Shown: positions 28,442 through 54,700, numbered from the stretch's first letter. The stretch is 64,000 bases of DNA from Schizochytrium sp. TIO01 (GCA_004764695.1 SMSO01000033.1:2666001-2730000); one strand, 5' to 3'. A program made the numbers and translations. Notes: generated by a model from the letters alone, not told the origin.

Positions 28442-30226
28442 GTTGTATATCTCAATACCTCCAATGCAAGGAATCTCAATGCAGGGGATCCTGGCAGTCC
28501 AACAATTTCTGCAGAGACTATTTTCTTGAGCTCGAAGTTTCCGGTCTGCCGGCAGGGGCTAGAACCCGCTTTCTACTATAACATAGGGCTATCATACATT
28601 AGACATGCCTACAAAGTAAAAGGGTACCTGTATCTATTAGTCTGCATATAAACAACATTGAGGTCGATCAAAATCGAGGCAGATTTAGCTATACTTTTAT
28701 TATTATACCCCACCTCCAGCTTTGGACCTCATACATTCATATTGACTCGTCTCGCATACTGGGGGGCAATACGGGATTCATGTAAACCAGCAAATCTGGA
28801 AGAACTTTCTGCACACCAAAAGCGCTGCGATCGAGCCAAGCAAGCAACTTGAGCCTTGGAAAGATCCCATTGCTTTACGCTGACCAGAGCTTAAAGAGTG
28901 ACGATTGTATTGATTGCTTCTACGAGATCTCTGATGAAACATGCAAAGTACTACTTACTACCTAATCGAGACTATAGCATCCTAGCACGTGTCGAAAAGA
29001 AAACGTGCTGCTACAAATGAATCGAGTTCACTGCTCCAAAGAAGCTCGACGGTCTTCAAGCCGTCTCGAAGCGAAGCGACCTGGGAAGGCCGCCAGGTGC
29101 TGCGGCCACACGATGCACAGCCCGAAGTCGAGCGTGTAGGTGATTAATTAGACGAAAGCGGAAGGTTCGCTCGGCCAGCGCATGCACCACGGCCACTTGC
29201 GAAATCGAGCGGGCGGAGCACTGTACGACATAGTAGCGGAGTCCTAAGCCGTCTCTGGTGCCCATTACCCGAAGGTAGCTAGATTCTAGGGTACCTTCTT
29301 CGCAACACTACAAAGAGTACTCATACTCAGGTAGGTGCTGCTTGCTTGCCTACTTGAAGGCCCCAGATCAGAGCTAGACAACATTGCCTGGTTGGTTTAT
29401 TGGCTCAGCGTCTGCAGCGATCTTTTGCTCGTGACACACTAGTGCTACGATGGTGTACTTTCTCCAATACGAAAGGAGCCTTCACACTCTGACTAGTCAC
29501 AGGTCACTCCTGTCAATGCTTTGATTGATTGAAGTAGAGTGTCGTCCTACTAAGTAAGGTTAGTAATAATTTTGATTAAACAATTGAGAAATGAAGCAAA
29601 AGGCCTAAAAAAGAGTTAAACTTTGAACTATTTGCTACGGTGTCTTACAAGGCCAGGTAGAGAGGTAGCTATTTGAAGGCAAGTCTTTAGAACGGTCAAT
29701 GTTTAGATATCTATCGAGGTAGTGAGTAGGTAGGTAGGCCACGCTGAAAGACGTAGTAGCTTGTCCTTGTCCTTAGTTTCATGTAAAGGAGAATCCCCTC
29801 TTTCACTTTCACGTTTCGAAAGCATTGCAAAACCCAAGCTACAACACACATTACAGCAATCCAAGTAGAACCAAAGCTGCAATATTTCTTGAGTATTCGT
29901 GGTGTCACAGGAGGTGTGAGGATCACTCCACGAAGCGTATGTTGTGTTGAAAATACTGGAGAGAAAATCTTTAAGGTTCGCATTAAAATCACTGACATTG
30001 TGAGCTCGCAGTAACAGGCAGGATCTACGCAATACACGCATTAAACTGAGTAGCTTCTCCAAGGCATAACGCTGTAAAACAGGCCTTAAGACGCCTCCAA
30101 GATTTAAAAAGGTACTTAAGGACAATTAGACTTCGTGTTGACTTCGTCTTTCGATCTTGAATTCTAGTTGAGTAGAAGGTCCTTGCCAAAAGTTTATTGC
30201 AAGAATTAAACCAGAAAGCACGGAAG

Positions 30227-33200
30227 ATGCCCCCTGTATTTCATATAGAAGACATTAGTCGGTTCACCGCTTTCGTTCAGTAAGTGTATCAAAGCAAGCT
30301 CATTTGGCATAGCTAGTCACATTCAAAAGTCAAAAACCTTATGTAACATCCACTAACTTCTTGCACACTTAAATTATTGAGTGACAGTCTGAGTGAAAAG
30401 AACATTGACGATGTAGGCGCCAAAGCTCTCTCTGGAGCTCTGAAGAGCTGCAAATTTCTGAGGGAATTGCGGTACGTTTGGACAGCAAGCAACAGATACC
30501 GAGATTGTATTCGCATGAGAACGGTAAAGAGTGACTTCTACTCAAAAGTACCGAAGTTCAAAATGAATTAAACAACCTAAGCACTTCCAAGCCGTGCTCG
30601 GAAACAAACGTCTGGAAGACAAGTTACAATGGCACATGGATAATCAAGATAGAAATAGCTTGGCTGACGGTGGCTTGAGAACGAGATACACAGTCTGGGG
30701 GGTAACAACATTGGTGAGGAAGGCGCCAAAGCTCTATCTGGAGCTCTAAAGAGCTGCAAAAAGCTGACCAGTTTGTGGTACGTTTGAATGGCAAGCAAAA
30801 TAATGCTGAGATTGCATCCGCATGAGAACAATGAAAATGATTTCTTTTCAGAGCAATGTCGAAAAAAGCTATCTCCAAATTGAATTCAACAACCTGAGCA
30901 CATCGAAACATGCTTGAAAGCAATTGATTGACAGCGGCATGTGAATGACCAAGATGGGAATTTCTTGGCTGACGGTGGCTTGAGAACGATATACACAGTC
31001 TGGCAGGTAACAACATTGGTGATGAAGGCGTCAGAGCTCTCTTTGGGACTCTGAAAGACTGTGAACATTTGAAAATTTTGGGGTACGTTTGAATGGCAAG
31101 CAGCAAATACGGAGCCCGTGTTCGCATGAAATCGCAACGAGGATTTCTTTTCAGAGCAATATTAAAAATACCAGTCTCCACAATGCATTAAATCACCTGA
31201 GCACATCTAAACATGCTTGAAAGCAATTGATTTACAGCGGCACATGAATAATCGAGATGGGAATAGCTTGGCTGACGGTGGCTTAAGAACGATATACACA
31301 GTCTGGGGGGCAACAACATTGGCGAAGAAGGCGCCAAAGCTCTCTCTGGAGCTCTGGAGAGCTGTAAAAACCTGGCCTTTTTGCAGTACGTTTGAACAGC
31401 AAGCAAAATATGCTGAGATTGTATCCGCATGAGAACGGTAAAGATGATTTCTTTTCAGAGCAATATCGAAAATACCAATCTCCAAATTTAATTAAATCAC
31501 CTGAGCACATCTAAACATGCTTGAAAGCAACTGATTCACAGCGGCACATAAGTAATCGAGATGGGAATCGCTTGGCTGACGTTGGCTTGAGAACGATATA
31601 CACAGCCTTGAAGGCAACAACATTGGAGTTGCAGGCGCCAAAGCTCTATCTGAAGCTCTAAAAGACTGCGAAAAGCTGACCGATTTGTAGTACGTTTGAA
31701 TGGCAAGCAAAATATGCTCCTGAGATTGTATTCGCATGAGAAGCGCAACGAGGATTCATTTTTAGAGCAATATCGAAAATACCAGTCTCCACAATGAATT
31801 AAATCACCTGAGCACATCGAAACATGCTCGGAAGCAATTGATTCACAGAGGCACTTGAATGATTAAGATGGGAATTCCTTGGCTGACGGTGGCTTGAGAA
31901 CGAGATTCACAGCCTAACTGGGAACAACATTGGAGATGAAGGCGTCAAATTTCTCTCTGGGACTCTGGAGAGCTGCGAAAATTTGACAGAATTGGAGTAC
32001 GTTTGAATAGCAAGCAGCAAATACTCAGATTGTATTCGCATAAGCACCGCAATGAGGATTTCTTTTCAGAGCAACATCGAAAATACCAGTCTCCACAATG
32101 AATTAAATCACCTGAGCACATCTAAATATGCTTGAAAGCAATTGATTCACAGCGGCACATAAGTAATCGAGATAGGAATCGCTTGGCTGACGTTGGCTTG
32201 GGAACGATATACACAGCCTTGAAGGCAACAACATTGGCGATGTAGGCGCCAAAGCTCTCTCTGGAGCTCTGAAGGACTGTGAAGGTTTGACAGAATTGTA
32301 GTACGTTTGAATAGCAAGCAAAATATGCTGAGATTGTATTCGCATAAGTACCGCAATGAGGATTTCTTTTCAGAGCAACATCAAAGTACAAAGATCCACC
32401 ATGAATTAGATCACCTGAACACATCTAAACATGCTCGGAAGCAATTTATTCACAGAGGGACATGAATAATCATGATGGGAATAGCTTGGCTGACGTTGGC
32501 TTGAGAACTGTTGACACAGCCTTGAAAGGAACAACATTGGAGATGACGGCGCCAAATCTCTATCTAAAGCTCTGAAGAGCTGTAACAATTTGACCGATTT
32601 GTTGTACGTTTGAATGGCAAGCAAAATATGCTCCTGAGGTTGTATTCGCATGAGAAGCGCAACGAGGATTTCTTTTCAGAGCAACATCGACAATAACAAA
32701 ATCCACAATGAATTAAATCACCTGAGCACATCTAAATATGCTTGAAAGCAACCGATTCACAGCGGCACATAAGTAATCGAGATGAGAATAGCTTGGCTGA
32801 CGTTGGCTTGAGAACGATATACACAGCCTTGAAGGAAACAACATTGGCGAAGAAGGCGCCAAAGCTCTCTCTGAAGCTCTGGAGAGCTGCAAAAATCTGA
32901 CGGTATTGCGGTACGTTTGAACAGCAAGCAAAATATGCTCCTGAGATTGTATCCGCATGAGAACGGTAAAGATGATTTCTTTCCAGAGCAATATCGAAAT
33001 TACCAATCTCCAAATTGATTTAAATCCCCTGAGCACATCTAAACATGCTTGAAAGCAACTGATTCACAGTGGCACATGAGTAATCGAGATGGGAATCTCT
33101 TGGCTAACGTTGGCTTGAGAGCGAGCTACACAGTCTGAGTGATAACAATATTGGCGATGTAGGCGCCAAAGCTCTTTCTGGGGCTCTGGAGAGCTGCAAA

Positions 33201-36200
33201 AATCTGACAAGTCTGCGGTACGTTTCGTTGGAAAGCAGCAAATTCTGAGACCATGCTTTTATGAGAATAGCGAGAGGTGTTTAAGCACAAGATGCAAAGA
33301 TGTAATGCACGCTAGGACGAAGATGGTGTACAACGCTGAGAGAAAGCTACTTGCGTGTCCAAATCTGCGATCTAGATACTGACTATATCTTATGAACAAG
33401 GAGCACAGTCTTGAAAGTAACAACATCAGCATCAAAGGTGCTATGACTCTTTTTGTAGCACTAGGAGGTCACAAGAGACTGAAAGAATTGAAGTACGTTT
33501 AATTGATTACAACAAACAACCTTTTCTTCTCAAAGGGAAGATCGAAGTAGAGTGGAAGCAAGAAAACGATTTTCAATTTCGAACAAAATCTGAACCCTCG
33601 AATTCTGCAGAGAACGACAGATTTTACATTACAGTAGGAAATAGTGAAAGAGTTGAAGTGTTTGAGGTGATGCTGGTGGCGCATAAATGATTAAGGTGAA
33701 TATGGTTTGACTGACTTCGTTTGACCACCACAATGTAGTCTTTTACACAACGCAATCAGGATTGAGGGTAGTAAGGCCCTCGCGGATATTCTACATGAAG
33801 TATGTCCTGCTTTTCAGATTTCGTAAGTGCCATTTCCTCTGTCGGTAATAGTTTGTGCAGAATCGTCCTGGCTTCATTTACCTGATTCGGTTGAGTCGAT
33901 AGATCATGTCTACAGCATAGATGGTTGTTCTCACATTTATCTGATTAGTTTTAATTATCATGATGCAGGTCCGAGTTTGATAAACTTCCCATCCACAAAA
34001 ACCTAATCGCAACTTTGTCTCTTGGGAATGACCCAAGTGAAATATCTACTTATGGTGTGAATGCATCTTCGTAAGTTCCCTGTGTTGCTAAAGAGTTAAT
34101 TCTTTAAGATATGGCCGTCAAGATTTCAAGTATCCCTGACCCGCTCGTTTATACATTCATACACTATTTAGAGATCAACTAGACAATCCCAACGCGAGCT
34201 TCTCTGATGTAATAGAGTTCGCCAGAAAGATCTCCAATCTTCGCACAAGTGTTGGAGGAGTAAGAGGAGAATCCATGCGCGCCAGTATTGACGTGCTTAA
34301 AGAATACGTCACGGCTCCAATTTCATCTGCAATCCAGCGCTATATTGAGCAGTTGAGGCTTCGACAATTTTTTGGAGACATTGCAAATGCAAAGGCTTGC
34401 CTGGAAACACTTCAGGAGAAGATTCGGAAGAGCCCTCCATCCGAGCTGTTGCCTAGTCTCATAAAGGAGCGAGACGCTGAAAAAGTACGCTTACAATCAC
34501 TCATGCAAACCGTATCCCCTTGGCTCCGGGAGAAAAGCTGCGAAAAAGACGAAGACTTAATGCGAGGACTGAAAGCAAAACTTCAAAATGTATCTGAGAA
34601 TCTGGACACAAGCGATGCGTCTCTCCGTCAAGAGACATTCGAAAATGACTTGCAACAAATTGAAGAGCTCGAAGACCGTGTCAAGGCATGGCTAGAAGAG
34701 CGTAAGACGAGAAGTGAGTCAGCGTCTGCCTTTAAACAGCAGAGTATGCAAGCTCTTGAAAAGCTAACATCCCGGGCATCTGAATTAGGTCTCGGAGATG
34801 TTTTCACTCTTGCTGTTGGAACGCCTGAAAAAGCTACAGATATAGAGGGAGAGCTACTGAGTCTTCGGGGTGCCCTTCAGGAAGAACTCAATTTTCTACA
34901 AGACGATACCCTAGAGGTGCAGATGAAGGAGCTGCTTTCGACGGTCAGCTGTATTCTCAGGAATTTTGAAAATTTAGCTGAAAAAAAAGGTTTTGATGAG
35001 ACGGCCTTTCATTCACCCAAGGCTCTTATTGACTTTGTTTTGTTGGGTTCTCGTGAACCAAACCTTTTGCACCTTGAGCAACTATATAAAAAGCTCGAAC
35101 TTTCGCGGGATGCTATAGAGATCCTGAATAGCTTGAAAAGGGTCAAAGATCTTGCAGAGAAGGATGCAAAGGCGAATACAGAGCACTTTAAAACCCTGAT
35201 TGCACAGCAAGAGATGATTCTCTCAGACGGGACTCCTATTGAGCTGAGTAAAAGAATTCGCCATAAGCTTGCTGAAACATTGCAGCATGCGCAAGAGCAT
35301 TTTCCGGAGCTACTGAAAGACAATGATTGGTTAGAAAGACTGCATGTAAGTGCAGAAGATACTTTTGAAGTAGCTCGCTCGGGGCTCTGGTTGGCGAATG
35401 TAAAAGTCTCGGACTACCAGTTTGTTGGAGAGCCTCTCGCATCTAGAGGCGGCAAGATGGTACAAAAGATACTCGACACCCATGGTCGAACTTTCGTTCT
35501 TAAACAATTTCAGCTCGGAGATATGAGCCAATCCAAAGCGTTTTACAGACAAGTTGCGAATCTAGGAAAGGTGGCGTCGCCGCACGTGATCCAAATCATC
35601 GGTGCTTTTGTAGATGCCCCCGCTCCCGGAATGCCGCCGCGAGGATGCATTGTAATGCCTTACTATGAGCATGGTGACCTAGCCAAATGGATTGTTGAGC
35701 ATACTAATGAAGACAAAGCGGTTCGTGATCGGCTTGCAACAGGCTTGCTTATTGGAATTGCAGAATTCCATGCGCACGGAATCGTGCATTGTGATATCAA
35801 ACCAGAGAACATTTTTCTCACAAGTAACGGAACTCCATTGCTTGGTGATTTTGACGGCATAAAACTCGCAGACTGTACAGCAACGTACACGTCTCTTCAA
35901 GCTACACCGCATTATATTGCCCCTGAGTTACGGAATGGGCCGGTAGATGTATTGAAAACAGCGATGGACATGTATTCGGTGGGTGTCGTGTTGGAAGACC
36001 TGTATCCTGACCCAACTCCTGAAATGCTAGAACTTATTAATTTGCTTAAAGTAGCCGACCCTGATCAGCGCCTCAGTGCTTGTGAAGCGCTCCAGCACAA
36101 AGCATTTGGCGCTACAGAAATTGCCGTGGAGACGTGCCTTGTGTGTATGGAGGAAATCAAAATTTCTGAAGGGACGAGTTGCGAGAAGGGAGACTTTCTT

Positions 36201-36860
36201 TGTAAGAATTGCCTTGAAAGCTCAGTCGCAGCTGCTGCTGAGCCCCAAGCCTCCGTGAGGATTGATGCTGATGGGGCGATGGCATGTATTAAGCCTGAGT
36301 GTAGTGGACGAATCCTTGGCAGAGATATCACCCGACTTGCTCCTGATGCTGTCAACCACCTTTTACGAATCGCCCAGACCAAAGTGGAAAGCGAAGCAGC
36401 AATTCGAGCCGAGCGAGAAATACAAAATCGTATGGCTCAAATTTTACAAACGGAGGGATTGGCTCAATGCCATTTACAGCATATCCAGGAAGAGATTTTG
36501 AATATATGCTGTCCACACTGCAGAACTTGTTTCGACCAATTTGATGACTGCTGTGCAGTTGAATGTGGTAATGCTGCATGTGGCCATTACTTCTGCGCGT
36601 GGTGTCTTCAATATAAGTCGCGGGACAATTCTGCTTGTCACAGCCATGTAAGAACATGTTCAAGGAAGCTTGGAGATGATCCATTTTTCCCAAATTCATT
36701 TGAGCAGGTTCGGGAGGCGTGGCAGCTAATACGAGCGGAGCGTCTCCGGGAGTATTGGAGAGCAAACATTAAGGACAGAAGTCTTCCAGAAATTCTGGAA
36801 GCGCAGCTTGTGCCTATGCTAACCCAAGATCTCGTTGGCTCAGAATTTAGTTTGCAGTAG
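30227..36860 (+). CDS. Spliced LRR - coiled coil - protein kinase - RING1/Rcat (RBR-like E3) protein; 15 exons, predicted 1283 aa
   Basis: Exons: 30227-30279, 30388-30471, 30694-30777, 30999-31082, 31302-31385, 31606-31689, 31913-31996, 32217-32300, 32520-32603, 32827-32910, 33134-33217, 33409-33492, 33739-33822, 33969-34070, 34172-36860. All introns are GT-AG (GTACGT or GTAAGT donors), all phase 2, most with a clear CTGAC/CTAAC branch point. Joined length is 3852 nt with no internal stop, in frame with track ORF 34275-36860. Kinase motifs VLKQF, HCDIKPEN, GDFDG, YIAPE, DMYSVG. Cys-rich domains CLVC...CKNC...CIKPEC and CPHC...DDCCAVEC...CGHYFCAWC...HSHVRTC. Confidence 0.88.
30388..33217 (+). 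repeat. Tandem array of ten ~305-bp exon+intron units (84-nt LRR exon + 219-223-nt intron), followed by two diverged LRR exons up to 33822
   Basis: Start-to-start spacings are 306, 305, 303, 304, 307, 304, 303, 307 and 307. Recurrent GTACGTTTG...TTGGCT(G/A)ACG(G/T)TGGCTT...CACAG intron and AACAACATTGG...GGCGCCAAAGCTCT exon sequences. Confidence 0.95.
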
Positions 36861-51703: not shown

Positions 51704-54700
51704 ATGAGCTTTGATGCGGCATTGAAGCCATGCGTGGTCAAAGCACTCCAAGACATTGACAAGGGCGAATCGGAGATTATCCTGAAGGACGTTGGACTCT
51801 CATATGAGGAACTATTAGCGGTGGCAAATGCTCTCAAGAGAAACCTCACGGTACGCAAACTTGACCTTTCAGGCAACGCCACGCTAGATGCAAGGGCGGG
51901 CGACATTCTTCGATCTTTGCTAGAAGTGAACGCCTTTCTTGATGAAATTGATCTCTCAGGCTGCTCAAAGATTGGCCCTTCGGGTATTAGCGAAATTGCG
52001 AATGGCCTTCGAATCAATATGACAGTTCGTACGCTTCATCTGCGGAATACGGAAATGGGCGGTTATCTTGGTACACGTCGATTATCAAGTGCCTTGCGCA
52101 CTAATAAGTCTCTCGAGAACCTCGACCTGCGTATGAATGGACTTGGCGTACAAGGTGCAAAACATCTTGCCAAAGCCCTTGTTGGCAACACAAGTTTGCA
52201 ATTCTTGAATATCAGTGAAAATGATATCACAGACGACGGTGCGGTGATGATGTCGAAGACTCTTCGAATGAACCGTAGCTTGGAAAAACTTGATATGTGG
52301 AGAAATGGTATTGGAGAGCATGGTGCTTCACATCTCCGAGAAGCTGTACGAGAAAATTCGGTTATTCAAACTCTCAACACAGAAAACGTCATCCATCGCA
52401 ATGACAACGCACGGCGTATCATCGGGCAACGTGAAGCCCAAAGCCCAGCCGTAAAACTGACACCTCTTGAAAGGAGATCGATGCAGTTGTTTCGGTGTAT
52501 TTTTCAGCACCAGGGTTGGCACGAAGATGATCCAGACACGTTGCTTGAAACCGATGAGCAGGAGGAGGCACCTGACAAAGTTGCAGCTATTATCAGCATG
52601 GTAGAAGATATTATACCAGAGGAGAACCGAGATGTTGAAGTGGTTCTACCATTGAGGTTTTCTCCAGAGGCTTTTCGTCTTGCCCATAACGACACCGAAC
52701 TCTTCGTGTGGTGCATTGAGCAGCTTGCACAAGCTGATTGCTACAGCAAAATGCTAGATGAACCCCTCAAATCAAGTCGCCTTTGGCTTCAAGAGATTGA
52801 TGGTGAAGCGATGCCTATGGCTCACCTTATTATGAGCAGCCGAGAATGTGATGGCGGTGTTGAAAAGTTATGCGAAGCGATTTTCAATCATATGACAATT
52901 GACGAAGGCAGGAAATTATTCAAAGCGAAGGACAGCGCAGGGCGTACATTTCGCTCTCTTGCGTCAGGACACGCTAGCGAGAGCATCGTAGCATGGGCCA
53001 AAGGGTACGGCACCTATCTGCTGCGTTATGATATTGTTGATGGCCCGCCTGTTCACGAAAGTAAAACATGTGCAGTTCATTTTGCTACGGACATTCTTAC
53101 TGAACAAGAGGTGGCTTTGAAAATTATGAAAGATCCAGAACAGTTTCGAAACGAACTTATCTCTCGGGACCTCATCAAGCCAAGTGATTCATTTGAATCC
53201 CTTCCAGATGTTATTGAAGCTAGCGAGTGCACCGTCAAACTAATGACGCATGTCGTCCCAATCGTCCGAGCGCATTGCGCAGATCGGTGTGTTGTAATGC
53301 CCCGTGCAACTCGTTCGCTCTTTGAAGCGATCAATACAGAACAATTTGTCTCTCGGCAATTAGGTAAAATCCGAACAATTGCGTATGCGCTGGCGATTGC
53401 ATTGCAAGAATTACAAGAAGGAGGACGAATTCACGCAGATATCAAACCACGAAACTTTGTTCGTGTTTCAAAGAGCACTTCAGATACATTTGCAGCAGAA
53501 AACGGAGCTCTTAAGCTGCATTCAAAATGGTTTCAAGTTCGGCGTGCTTCATTGAGATCTATTGAGGGAAGTGGAGGTGAAAATTCGAATGATGAGAGTG
53601 TTGTTGGTGAGGACTGGCAACTCATCGACTTGGATGCATCTGTGGCTATAGGAAGCCCTGCAGGTCTGAAACACAGCAGCGGCTACTGCCCTCCAGAGTT
53701 AGCTCGCGAGTTATTTCCGGCCGGGGCTAGTGGTACTGTTGTGGCTGCTTCTAGCTTTGATGTTTGGAGTTTTGGGGCAATTTTTTACCAGATGCTTTCA
53801 GGTACAAAGCTTTTCATGGTTGACGAAACTGATGACAACTTAGTTTCATTTCATCAAAAAGCAGAATTAATTAACTGGATTACAATAGATCGAGATCGCT
53901 TAGCTCGCATTCACAACGAAGAATGGGCTCGTTGGGAAACAGAATACGCAAAGGATCTCGTACGTGGCTGTCTTATGGGCGACCCTAAAGAGCGTCTCAC
54001 AATCGACGCTGTATTGAAGCACCCATTCTTCACAACAGCAGAAGGCAAACCAGCTCTGGCGTCAGCACCTGAAAATGCCCCCCTGAATGCCGTTTCGGAA
54101 AGCAAAGATGGCGTGGAGAGCTATGCGTCTCCTAAAGACGCGACTAAACGCATTCTGTCTTTCCGTGTCAAAGTGGAGCCTGCAGGTGGAAGCTCGTCTC
54201 GCGCGAAAGGATTTCCGTTGCGTCGACGAGCCGAGCTTGAAATGGTGTATCCTCAGCGATACCACTTTTTCTTGTCTCACATGCAGAAGGAAGCTGCCGG
54301 CATTGTAAAAGATTTATATCTCAACTTGACAGAAGCAAGGTGTTTGGCTTGGATTGATATGCATGCCGAAGATCTTACACAAGATTCGATGCGGCATGGT
54401 GTCGAAAACTCGAGCTTCTATTTACTAGTCTTGACAACAAATGTACTTTTTAGACCTTTCTGTGTCATGGAGCTTTTCTGGGCGATTACTCATCATGGTG
54501 AAGATTCGGATAAAAAGATTGTATTCGTAGTTGAGGAAGACGGGAGGTTTTCTCCCTGGGATGCTGAAATAGACGTGCCTTGGATCTCGGACAAGGAGTA
54601 TGAAGCAGTTCTTACAAAGCGCGGTAGACTAAGTGCCGAGGAAATTCAAAAGAAGGTGGATGCCTTCAAACTAGCCTCCAAACAGCTTCGTGCGGGCATG

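Follow-up and report, generated by a model that had tools for sequence, protein, structure and literature searches.

Thraustochytrid genes that join arrays of single-repeat LRR exons to a kinase and an RBR-like module

We analyzed a 64,000-nucleotide stretch of the genome of the thraustochytrid Schizochytrium sp. TIO01 (GCA_004764695.1, SMSO01000033.1:2666001-2730000; hereafter the window, whose first letter is position 1). Positions 30227-36860 of its plus strand very probably hold a real, transcribed and spliced gene of this Aurantiochytrium-like protist, and we are equally confident of its architecture: a tandem array of exons that each encode one leucine-rich repeat (LRR), followed by a helical region, a protein kinase and a module resembling RING-between-RING (RBR) ubiquitin ligases. 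Taken as a whole, the evidence moderately favors a cytosolic, single-chain protein, with about 12 LRRs, the helical region, a non-RD Ser/Thr kinase and the RBR-like module, that acts as a recognition receptor and whose arrays have been diversified by recombination.

Results

A 15-exon gene built from uniform LRR cassettes

A script run on the window resolves the gene into 15 exons whose spliced frame comprises 1283 codons with its sole stop at the end. Twelve of the exons (2-13) are exactly 84 nt long, all 14 introns have GT..AG borders and lie in phase 2, and the donor GTACGTTT is identical in 11 of the 14. A strict cassette pattern (AG, then an open 84 nt in phase 2, then GTA[CA]GT) matched 12 times in the 64-kb window, every time at a cassette exon, and 0 times on the minus strand. 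Tandem Repeats Finder reports a 307-bp unit in 8.5 copies (82% matches) at 30631-33208 (+), which corresponds to a tandem array of an exon-plus-intron unit of about 305 bp. A 185-aa antisense open reading frame (ORF) across this array (30624-31181, minus strand) is a by-product of a repeated unit that has no stops in that frame; no sign of a gene emerged there, though none was looked for. A first-pass annotation of the window had proposed this hidden model, with its twelve 84-nt exons, 14 phase-2 introns and 1283-aa frame; the script, the pattern control and the spliced contigs described below confirm it. Its two further claims, one LRR per exon and a uniform phase that makes the cassettes modular, are likewise borne out by the 28-residue repeats with their exon-by-exon domain matches and by the phase of all 14 introns.

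The coding part of exon 1 (30227-30279, plus strand like all exons of the gene) spans 53 nt, an ATG-initiated 17 codons plus 2 nt, downstream of an in-frame stop; a matching 53-nt first coding exon is recognizable in 7 of the 12 paralogs checked. The 5′ untranslated region extends at least to 30150, from where an RNA-like contig runs into exon 2. This exon carries LRR cassette 1, which has a degenerate start (30388-30471), and both its acceptor and its donor are used in RNA-like contigs. Cassettes 2 to 5 (exon 3, 30694-30777; exon 4, 30999-31082; exon 5, 31302-31385; exon 6, 31606-31689) and 7 to 10 (exon 8, 32217-32300; exon 9, 32520-32603; exon 10, 32827-32910; exon 11, 33134-33217) were delimited by the exon script and the LRR_6 scan. 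Contigs add support for exons 4, 6, 8 and 10, and exon 5 is joined to exon 6 in a form with a variant 11-nt exon end; exon 9 is the sole cassette without transcript support. Cassette 6 (exon 7, 31913-31996) has an acceptor that is used in contigs of both RNA-like runs with a variant 7-nt start. The array closes with a degenerate cassette 11 (exon 12, 33409-33492) and a terminal, cap-like LRR cassette with the donor GTAAGT (exon 13, 33739-33822); the same cap, ending ...SLHKACPSV.., ends most of the sampled paralog arrays. A 102-nt linker exon (exon 14, 33969-34070) leads to exon 15 (34172-36860; 2689 nt, 895 codons plus stop), which is supported by RNA-like contigs of 2808 and 2905 nt and by paralogous frames.

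Two features make the cassettes interchangeable. With phase 2 throughout, the gain, loss or skipping of any cassette stays in frame, and since the first base of each cassette exon is T or C, the shared junction codon never becomes a stop, whichever two exons are joined. The exon border falls inside the LRR beta strand. A promoter and terminator scan found none; its patterns are of bacterial type and uninformative here.

Contigs from public runs are spliced at the predicted bases

We compared contigs of public sequencing runs with the gene over positions 30150-36149, a range that leaves the last 711 nt of the gene outside. Runs X1 and X3 are RNA-like, and X16 and X20 are DNA-like (a genome-sized ~65 Mb of contigs); the transcript contigs are Logan assemblies, not single molecules. 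Contigs of X1 and X3 skip introns 2, 3, 11, 12, 13 and 14 exactly at the predicted bases: introns 2 and 3 in X3, intron 3 also in X1, intron 11 in both and intron 12 in X3. A single 2905-nt contig of X3 joins exons 13, 14 and 15 and so connects the array to the kinase exon, a link whose absence the first-pass annotation had named as grounds for abandoning its model. The DNA-like runs contain no intron-skipping joints over the same range. The mapping of all 14 junctions that it had called for thus succeeded in part, with these six introns removed exactly as predicted and the other joints falling at predicted exon ends in a cassette order that differs from the reference.

These other joints connect, for example, exon 4 to an exon-8-like cassette and an 8-like to a 10-like cassette, and some of them go back along the array. 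They carry 5-15 replaced letters at the exon ends, which are hypervariable, and the runs that contain them differ from the reference at 16 sites over 1978 nt of exon 15. On these two grounds we read them, more simply, as cassettes of another allele or strain placed on the nearest reference exon, and not as back-splicing or programmed skipping. One variant cassette end continues into the donor GTACGTTT in the DNA-like run X20, whereas in X1 and X3 it runs straight into the start of an exon; this indicates splicing of a cassette that is absent from the reference array. Judging from these contigs, cassettes appear to differ between strains. In X16, the reference letter and an alternative letter each occur at about half depth at several sites (30181-30230 and 35110-35942), and pieces identical to the reference occur beside a variant cassette end; two haplotypes of the locus may therefore exist in one strain.

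Variable codons lie on the predicted binding face while introns are conserved

Exons 2-11 encode 28-residue LRRs of the ribonuclease inhibitor (RI) type with a period of exactly 28 and the consensus xLxGNNIGDEGAKALSGALKSCKNLTEL. Scanned alone against Pfam, 9 of these 10 exons match positions 10-24 of LRR_6 (E between 1e-4 and 0.035), each match staying below the 23.4-bit cut-off, as one exon covers only part of the LRR_6 model; exons 12, 13 and 14, also scanned singly, gave no Pfam match. The most variable repeat positions in the window gene are 1, 3, 4, 9, 10, 24, 26 and 27, among them the x residues of the LxxLxLxxN strand, the predicted concave face.

Conservation along the unit runs in the reverse of the usual order: in units 3-10, likeness is 85.5% in introns, 76% in exons and 67% in the patches at the exon ends. 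The same holds on a larger scale, as 50 units from nine subtelomeric paralogs vary by 0.084 bit per nt in their introns and by 0.00 in framework codons, compared with 2.6-5.0 bits at codons 3, 4, 9, 26, 27 and 28 and the split codon. The variable patches belong to a limited, reused set (18 distinct 3′ and 31 distinct 5′ patches in the 50 units) and carry linked synonymous differences in Leu codons. These two properties led us to reject random hypermutation of the variable codons and point to the shuffling of old variants by gene conversion or unequal crossing-over. The best-kept parts of the unit are the intron just after the donor GTACGTTT and a stretch ~110-140 nt into the intron (over 30472-33500). 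Rfam returned no match for the introns, so their conservation is not explained by a known RNA family.

A cytosolic protein with a helical region and a non-RD kinase

Exon 15 begins with an all-helical region of about 409 aa (34173-35399, +), which AlphaFold2 (AF2) models as helices only (pLDDT 76.5). Foldseek found no PDB fold match for this model at E<=0.001, the weak rows being long-helix proteins, and the region gave nothing significant in Pfam and no usable protein-atlas match.

The kinase domain follows (Pfam-matched stretch 35451-36002, +; Pkinase E=2.9e-29), with the VLK lysine, HCDIKPEN, DFD and APE. K444, H539-C-D541-I-K-P-E-N546, D559-F-D and P584-E585 are the same in all 10 family members compared, and the beta3 lysine, the D..N loop, the DFG aspartate and the APE motif that mark eukaryotic protein kinases are all present, as predicted from sequence. 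The HCD of the catalytic loop makes the kinase a non-RD kinase. Its nearest solved relatives in the PDB are generic Ser/Thr kinases, for which reason we rejected a special kinship to RIPK, IRAK or LRRK.

Exon 1 encodes a 17-residue polar start with no signal peptide, and exon 15 has no hydrophobic span (its top 19-residue hydropathy, 1.17, lies inside the kinase), which argues that the protein is cytosolic. It is therefore not a receptor in the membrane sense, as the first-pass annotation might be taken to say, although the domain order given there holds in the form LRRs, helical region, kinase and RING1/Rcat-like module. Plant-type LRR receptor kinases have a signal peptide and carry their LRRs outside the cell, ahead of a membrane-crossing segment; this protein lacks that build, and its LRRs belong to the cytosolic RI class. 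No exon matches NACHT, NB-ARC or a P-loop.

The tail resembles RBR ubiquitin ligases

A search of 1.84 billion representative proteins with the 250-residue Cys/His-rich tail returned 1597 relatives at E<=0.001. The first part of the tail is a RING1-like zinc module (36135-36302, +) with Cys 655, 658, 670, 677, 680, 705 and 710 of the exon-15 protein, all invariant in the family; a 36-sequence family profile finds RNF216 RING1 (E=2.7e-7) and parkin RING1 (4.5e-7) in the PDB. A Cys-free linker takes the place of the in-between-RING (IBR) domain (36303-36509, +) and is predicted to consist largely of a single helix of ~50 residues, located at positions 87-136 of the 256-aa AF2 model. The third part is a putative Rcat-like zinc module (36510-36659, +; C780, C783, C793/C794, C798, C803, H805, C808, C811, C822, H823, H825, C829), assigned by a weak alignment and by fold. 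Its pattern C-P-x-C ... G/D-C-x-A-x-x-C ... C-G-H-x-F-C-A-W-C is nearly invariant in the family, and a family Cys lies opposite the Rcat site of RNF216 (Cys in 7m4m, Ala in the trapped complex 8eb0), in a stretch that scores only 4.7 bits.

AF2 models the 256-aa tail at pLDDT 92.4, and the top Foldseek matches of the model are RBR ligases (RNF216, ARIH2, parkin, HHARI and HOIL-1); the RING of 1wim aligns with it at an rmsd of 3.3 over 91 columns. In Pfam the tail gave nothing significant, with the RING and IBR models below significance, and phmmer against the PDB gave only weak RNF4 and parkin matches. The RING1/Rcat call of the first-pass annotation thus stands by way of profile and predicted fold, for RING1 and, tentatively, for an Rcat-like finger, and finds nothing in Pfam alone. 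The predicted tail is an RBR-like module (RING1, long helix, Rcat-like finger) and not a canonical RBR.

The window gene is a divergent member of a large family

The gene had been presented as a single hidden gene. It is instead a divergent, chromosome-internal member of a family: from 315 first-look candidates in the same genome, which measures 64.07 Mb, we obtained at least 50 full-length paralogs of exon 15 at 52-60% identity, and 49 of 51 full-length paralog matches contain no stop. Arrays of 84-nt, phase-2 LRR exons lie upstream in 19 of 20 sampled paralogs, with 3 to >17 cassettes in units of 320-440 bp. A genome search with the unit of the window gene (303-307 bp, ~305 bp), which the first-pass annotation had suggested, matched only its own array, indicating an old, separate branch of the family. 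The gene lies ~200 kb from the contig end among HRQ1, LETM1-like, RF-1 and Myb genes, in a window of ~45% GC in which Rfam finds no family and hence no rRNA gene. The HRQ1 helicase encoded in the window shares 67% identity with its Hondaea fermentalgiana counterpart.

A family member is also found as a transcript, and relatives occur in other species. An MMETSP ORF (P0148/P0294, MMETSP0960) of 1240 aa encodes twelve 28-aa LRRs, the kinase and the same tail, and is 100% identical to the last exon of the paralog at G000:C13:1153892-1156630. In H. fermentalgiana, proteins annotated only as "Protein kinase, putative" have an ankyrin-kinase-tail or an LRR+ankyrin-kinase-tail build; kinase-tail proteins occur in a dinoflagellate and helicase-RING/IBR-tail proteins in oomycetes. 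A literature search found no paper on LRR genes in thraustochytrids.

A second frame with LRRs and a kinase lies 15 kb downstream of the window gene (51704-55414, +), an intronless frame of 1236 aa with LRR_6, Pkinase and TIR_2 domains. We rejected it as a family member, its likeness being at the kinase level only; the neighborhood thus holds another, independent combination of sensor, kinase and effector.

Subtelomeric paralog arrays fit repeats described as spacers

Many of the paralogs are flanked by consecutive 5S rRNA genes in the vicinity of 18S genes (loci L015 at G000:C12:16050-23550, L013, L018, L019 and others). The arrays of these paralogs have a period of 418-439 bp and 3.4-15.2 copies. 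In Aurantiochytrium limacinum, Group 5 LORE-TEARS have a unit of 408-481 bp in 1.8-20.4 copies between two 5S rRNAs; they have been treated as spacers without GenBank similarity, and LRRs and kinases are never mentioned (bioRxiv 10.1101/2023.06.15.545109). The paralog arrays on contigs C12, C8, C4 and C13 fit this group by period, copy number and place only, and the window array differs from it, with a 305-307-bp unit and no rRNA gene in the window. Repeats published as spacers thus appear to be exon-intron arrays of family genes.

Separate arrays of 374-386 bp, the unit length of Group 0, adjoin some paralogs (L015:6090-7487, L017:6220-7455 and L029:58-1668); a scan of these arrays found no LRR exons. 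In L012 and L015, some arrays have every second unit frame-broken (cassettes with ...QQHW...), giving an 850-bp super-period; the broken units may be skipped pseudo-exons or indel errors of the long-read assembly.

Contigs of this assembly end in TTAGG repeats (1898 matches versus 3 in the control). Oppositely oriented pairs of 18S genes flanked by paralogs, together with a TTAGG run, also occur inside large contigs (G000:C33 at ~1.95-2.01 Mb, C34 at ~2.83-3.00 Mb, C13 at ~7.18-7.35 Mb and C4:412544), so that the 9-Mb "contigs" may be chromosomes joined end to end. Published chromosomes measure 1-4 Mb (bioRxiv 10.1101/2023.06.15.545109).

Discussion

Precedents for the gene design

The closest known design is that of the LRR genes of Tetrahymena, followed by those of Ectocarpus. 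Tetrahymena has LRR exons of exactly 90 bp, >96% phase-2 introns and tandem exon-plus-intron units of ~350 bp; exon numbers differ among close paralogs, the youngest genes concentrate in subtelomeres and unequal crossing-over has been proposed, in a design that its authors thought might have evolved once only, in Tetrahymena (2019, PMC6564038). The window gene likewise has one exon length, phase-2 introns and tandem units, and the family shares with Tetrahymena the common junction codon, the varying exon numbers and the subtelomeric genes. It differs in its 84-nt exon with one 28-aa RI-type repeat, in belonging to a stramenopile and not a ciliate, in the fusion of the arrays to helical, kinase and RBR-like parts, and in counting ~50 genes as opposed to thousands; beside the units here we saw no LINE-like element.

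In the brown alga Ectocarpus, LRR-ROCO and LRR-kinase genes undergo exon shuffling and have been proposed as pathogen receptors (Zambounis et al. 2012, PMC3341825; PMC11378527). The first-pass annotation had named this precedent, which is real (PMC3341825), although Tetrahymena is closer (PMC6564038). Ectocarpus is also a stramenopile with one LRR per exon, repetitive exons and variable concave-face residues. Its exons, however, are of 72 nt and 24 aa with another LRR class, its proteins have either a ROC-COR GTPase or a kinase as output domain and lack an E3 module, and its genome is intron-rich, whereas most genes in the window read as long uninterrupted frames.

Vertebrate NOD-like receptors (NLRs) such as NLRP3 share cytosolic RI-type LRRs that are strictly modular by exon, so that exons can be skipped in frame (PMC6642158). 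Unlike them, the present protein has no NACHT or NB-ARC domain and its outputs differ; NLR LRR exons also usually hold two half-repeats. With the RBR ligases RNF216, parkin, ARIH1/2 and HOIL-1, it shares the RING1 profile match, a C-terminal zinc finger with a conserved Cys at the presumed catalytic position and the predicted fold; it differs from them in having a helix of ~50 residues in place of an IBR, an Asp for the RING1 His and a fusion to a kinase. What is new is the lineage, an RI-type cassette of 84 nt and its joining to both a kinase and an RBR-like ligase.

A candidate recognition receptor

Recognition is, on its own, a tentative assignment of function, which we regard as quite possible. 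Hypervariability of the concave face marks LRR recognition proteins in Ectocarpus and among the VLRs (PMC3341825), and the variable codons of the family are predicted to fall on the same face. It is reasonable to infer an immune and diversifying role. In such a mechanism, unequal crossing-over and gene conversion between exon-plus-intron units would, on an evolutionary time scale, lengthen and shorten the arrays and turn them into mosaics. This exchange would preserve the likeness of introns and framework and at the same time recombine a limited set of patches on the binding face. The LRR face would bind a variable ligand, probably microbial or viral, and the kinase, together with the transfer of ubiquitin from the putative Rcat cysteine, would relay that binding. 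Among the receptor kinases of innate immunity, the non-RD type is over-represented.

Several observations weigh against a diversified receptor of this kind. Among the cassettes of the window gene, dN/dS (Nei-Gojobori) is 0.74 at variable codons and 0.28 in the framework, values below 1 that show relaxed constraint or old shuffled variants and not proven positive selection; synonymous sites within the variable patches vary too. The kinase has DFD in place of DFG. In the tail, the zinc-binding His of RING1 is an Asp in this gene, no Cys/His cluster lies between C710 and C780, where the AF2 model has its long helix, and the predicted Rcat is a weak assignment from a weak sequence stretch and a modeled fold. 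On the transcript side, no RNA-like contig of X1 or X3 matched exon 9 at 90% likeness, and the RNA label of these two runs is itself a guess, for which the spliced contigs argue.

Alternative explanations

The most serious alternative, which we consider rather unlikely, is that the LRRs serve an endogenous role, as a signaling scaffold, in allorecognition or self/non-self discrimination of a mating-type-like kind, or in a process of the subtelomere or rDNA. A self/non-self role of this sort has been suggested for NLR-like genes of fungi. LRRs of the RI type bind proteins in general, a dN/dS below 1 suits such a role, the majority of paralogs are found between 5S genes in subtelomeres beside rDNA, and in Hondaea the repeat-kinase-RBR-like build is also seen with ankyrin repeats. 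However, at least 50 paralogs with a hypervariable binding face and differing repeat numbers would be unexpected of a housekeeping scaffold, and the window gene has ordinary genes as its neighbors, the window being free of rRNA genes.

Much less credible is programmed diversification, in which single cells would vary their receptors by regulated skipping, somatic recombination or conversion to obtain an anticipatory repertoire. Uniform phase 2 and pyrimidine-first exons would keep every exon-exon join open, and RNA-like contigs do join exon 4 to an 8-like exon, an 8-like to a 10-like exon and others exactly at exon ends. Nevertheless, the replaced letters at the hypervariable ends of these joints are more simply those of cassettes from another allele or strain: the same variant end occurs in DNA-like runs, the runs differ from the reference in exon 15 as well, and the contigs are assemblies. 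We give just as little credence to its extension to the whole family, in which clones or cells would reshuffle or selectively splice patches across at least 50 arrays, many of them subtelomeric, as an adaptive-like intracellular immunity in a stramenopile; were this true, repeats published as chromosome-end spacers would be the coding substrate of an immune system.

Least credible of all is that the array is a non-coding repeat, or a pseudogene in decay, whose frame happens to be open beside a kinase gene: such arrays have been published as non-coding spacers and some subtelomeric units are frame-broken, but the 12 exact 84-nt open exons with splice signals and 0 off-target matches, the spliced contigs of X1 and X3, the recurrence of exon 1, the cap exon and the last exon in paralogs, and the complete MMETSP transcript of a paralog all contradict it.

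Implications

We return to the reading that we favor, a family of cytosolic recognition receptors with recombined arrays. One chain would hold a sensor, a kinase and an RBR-like ligase, steps that animals spread over several proteins (e.g., NOD, RIPK2 and RBR ligases). Aurantiochytrium is culturable and transformable and carries latent mirusvirus-like elements, so the recognition idea is directly testable there. The reading of chromosome ends changes as well, as one class of "non-coding" rDNA-adjacent spacers appears to consist of exon-intron arrays. Should these proteins sense ligands, a marine protist with a heterotrophic lifestyle would possess an intracellular repertoire built on the genomic design of Tetrahymena and the brown algae, and the combination of uniform exons, a single intron phase and hypervariable concave-face codons would be a recurrent solution and not a ciliate oddity.

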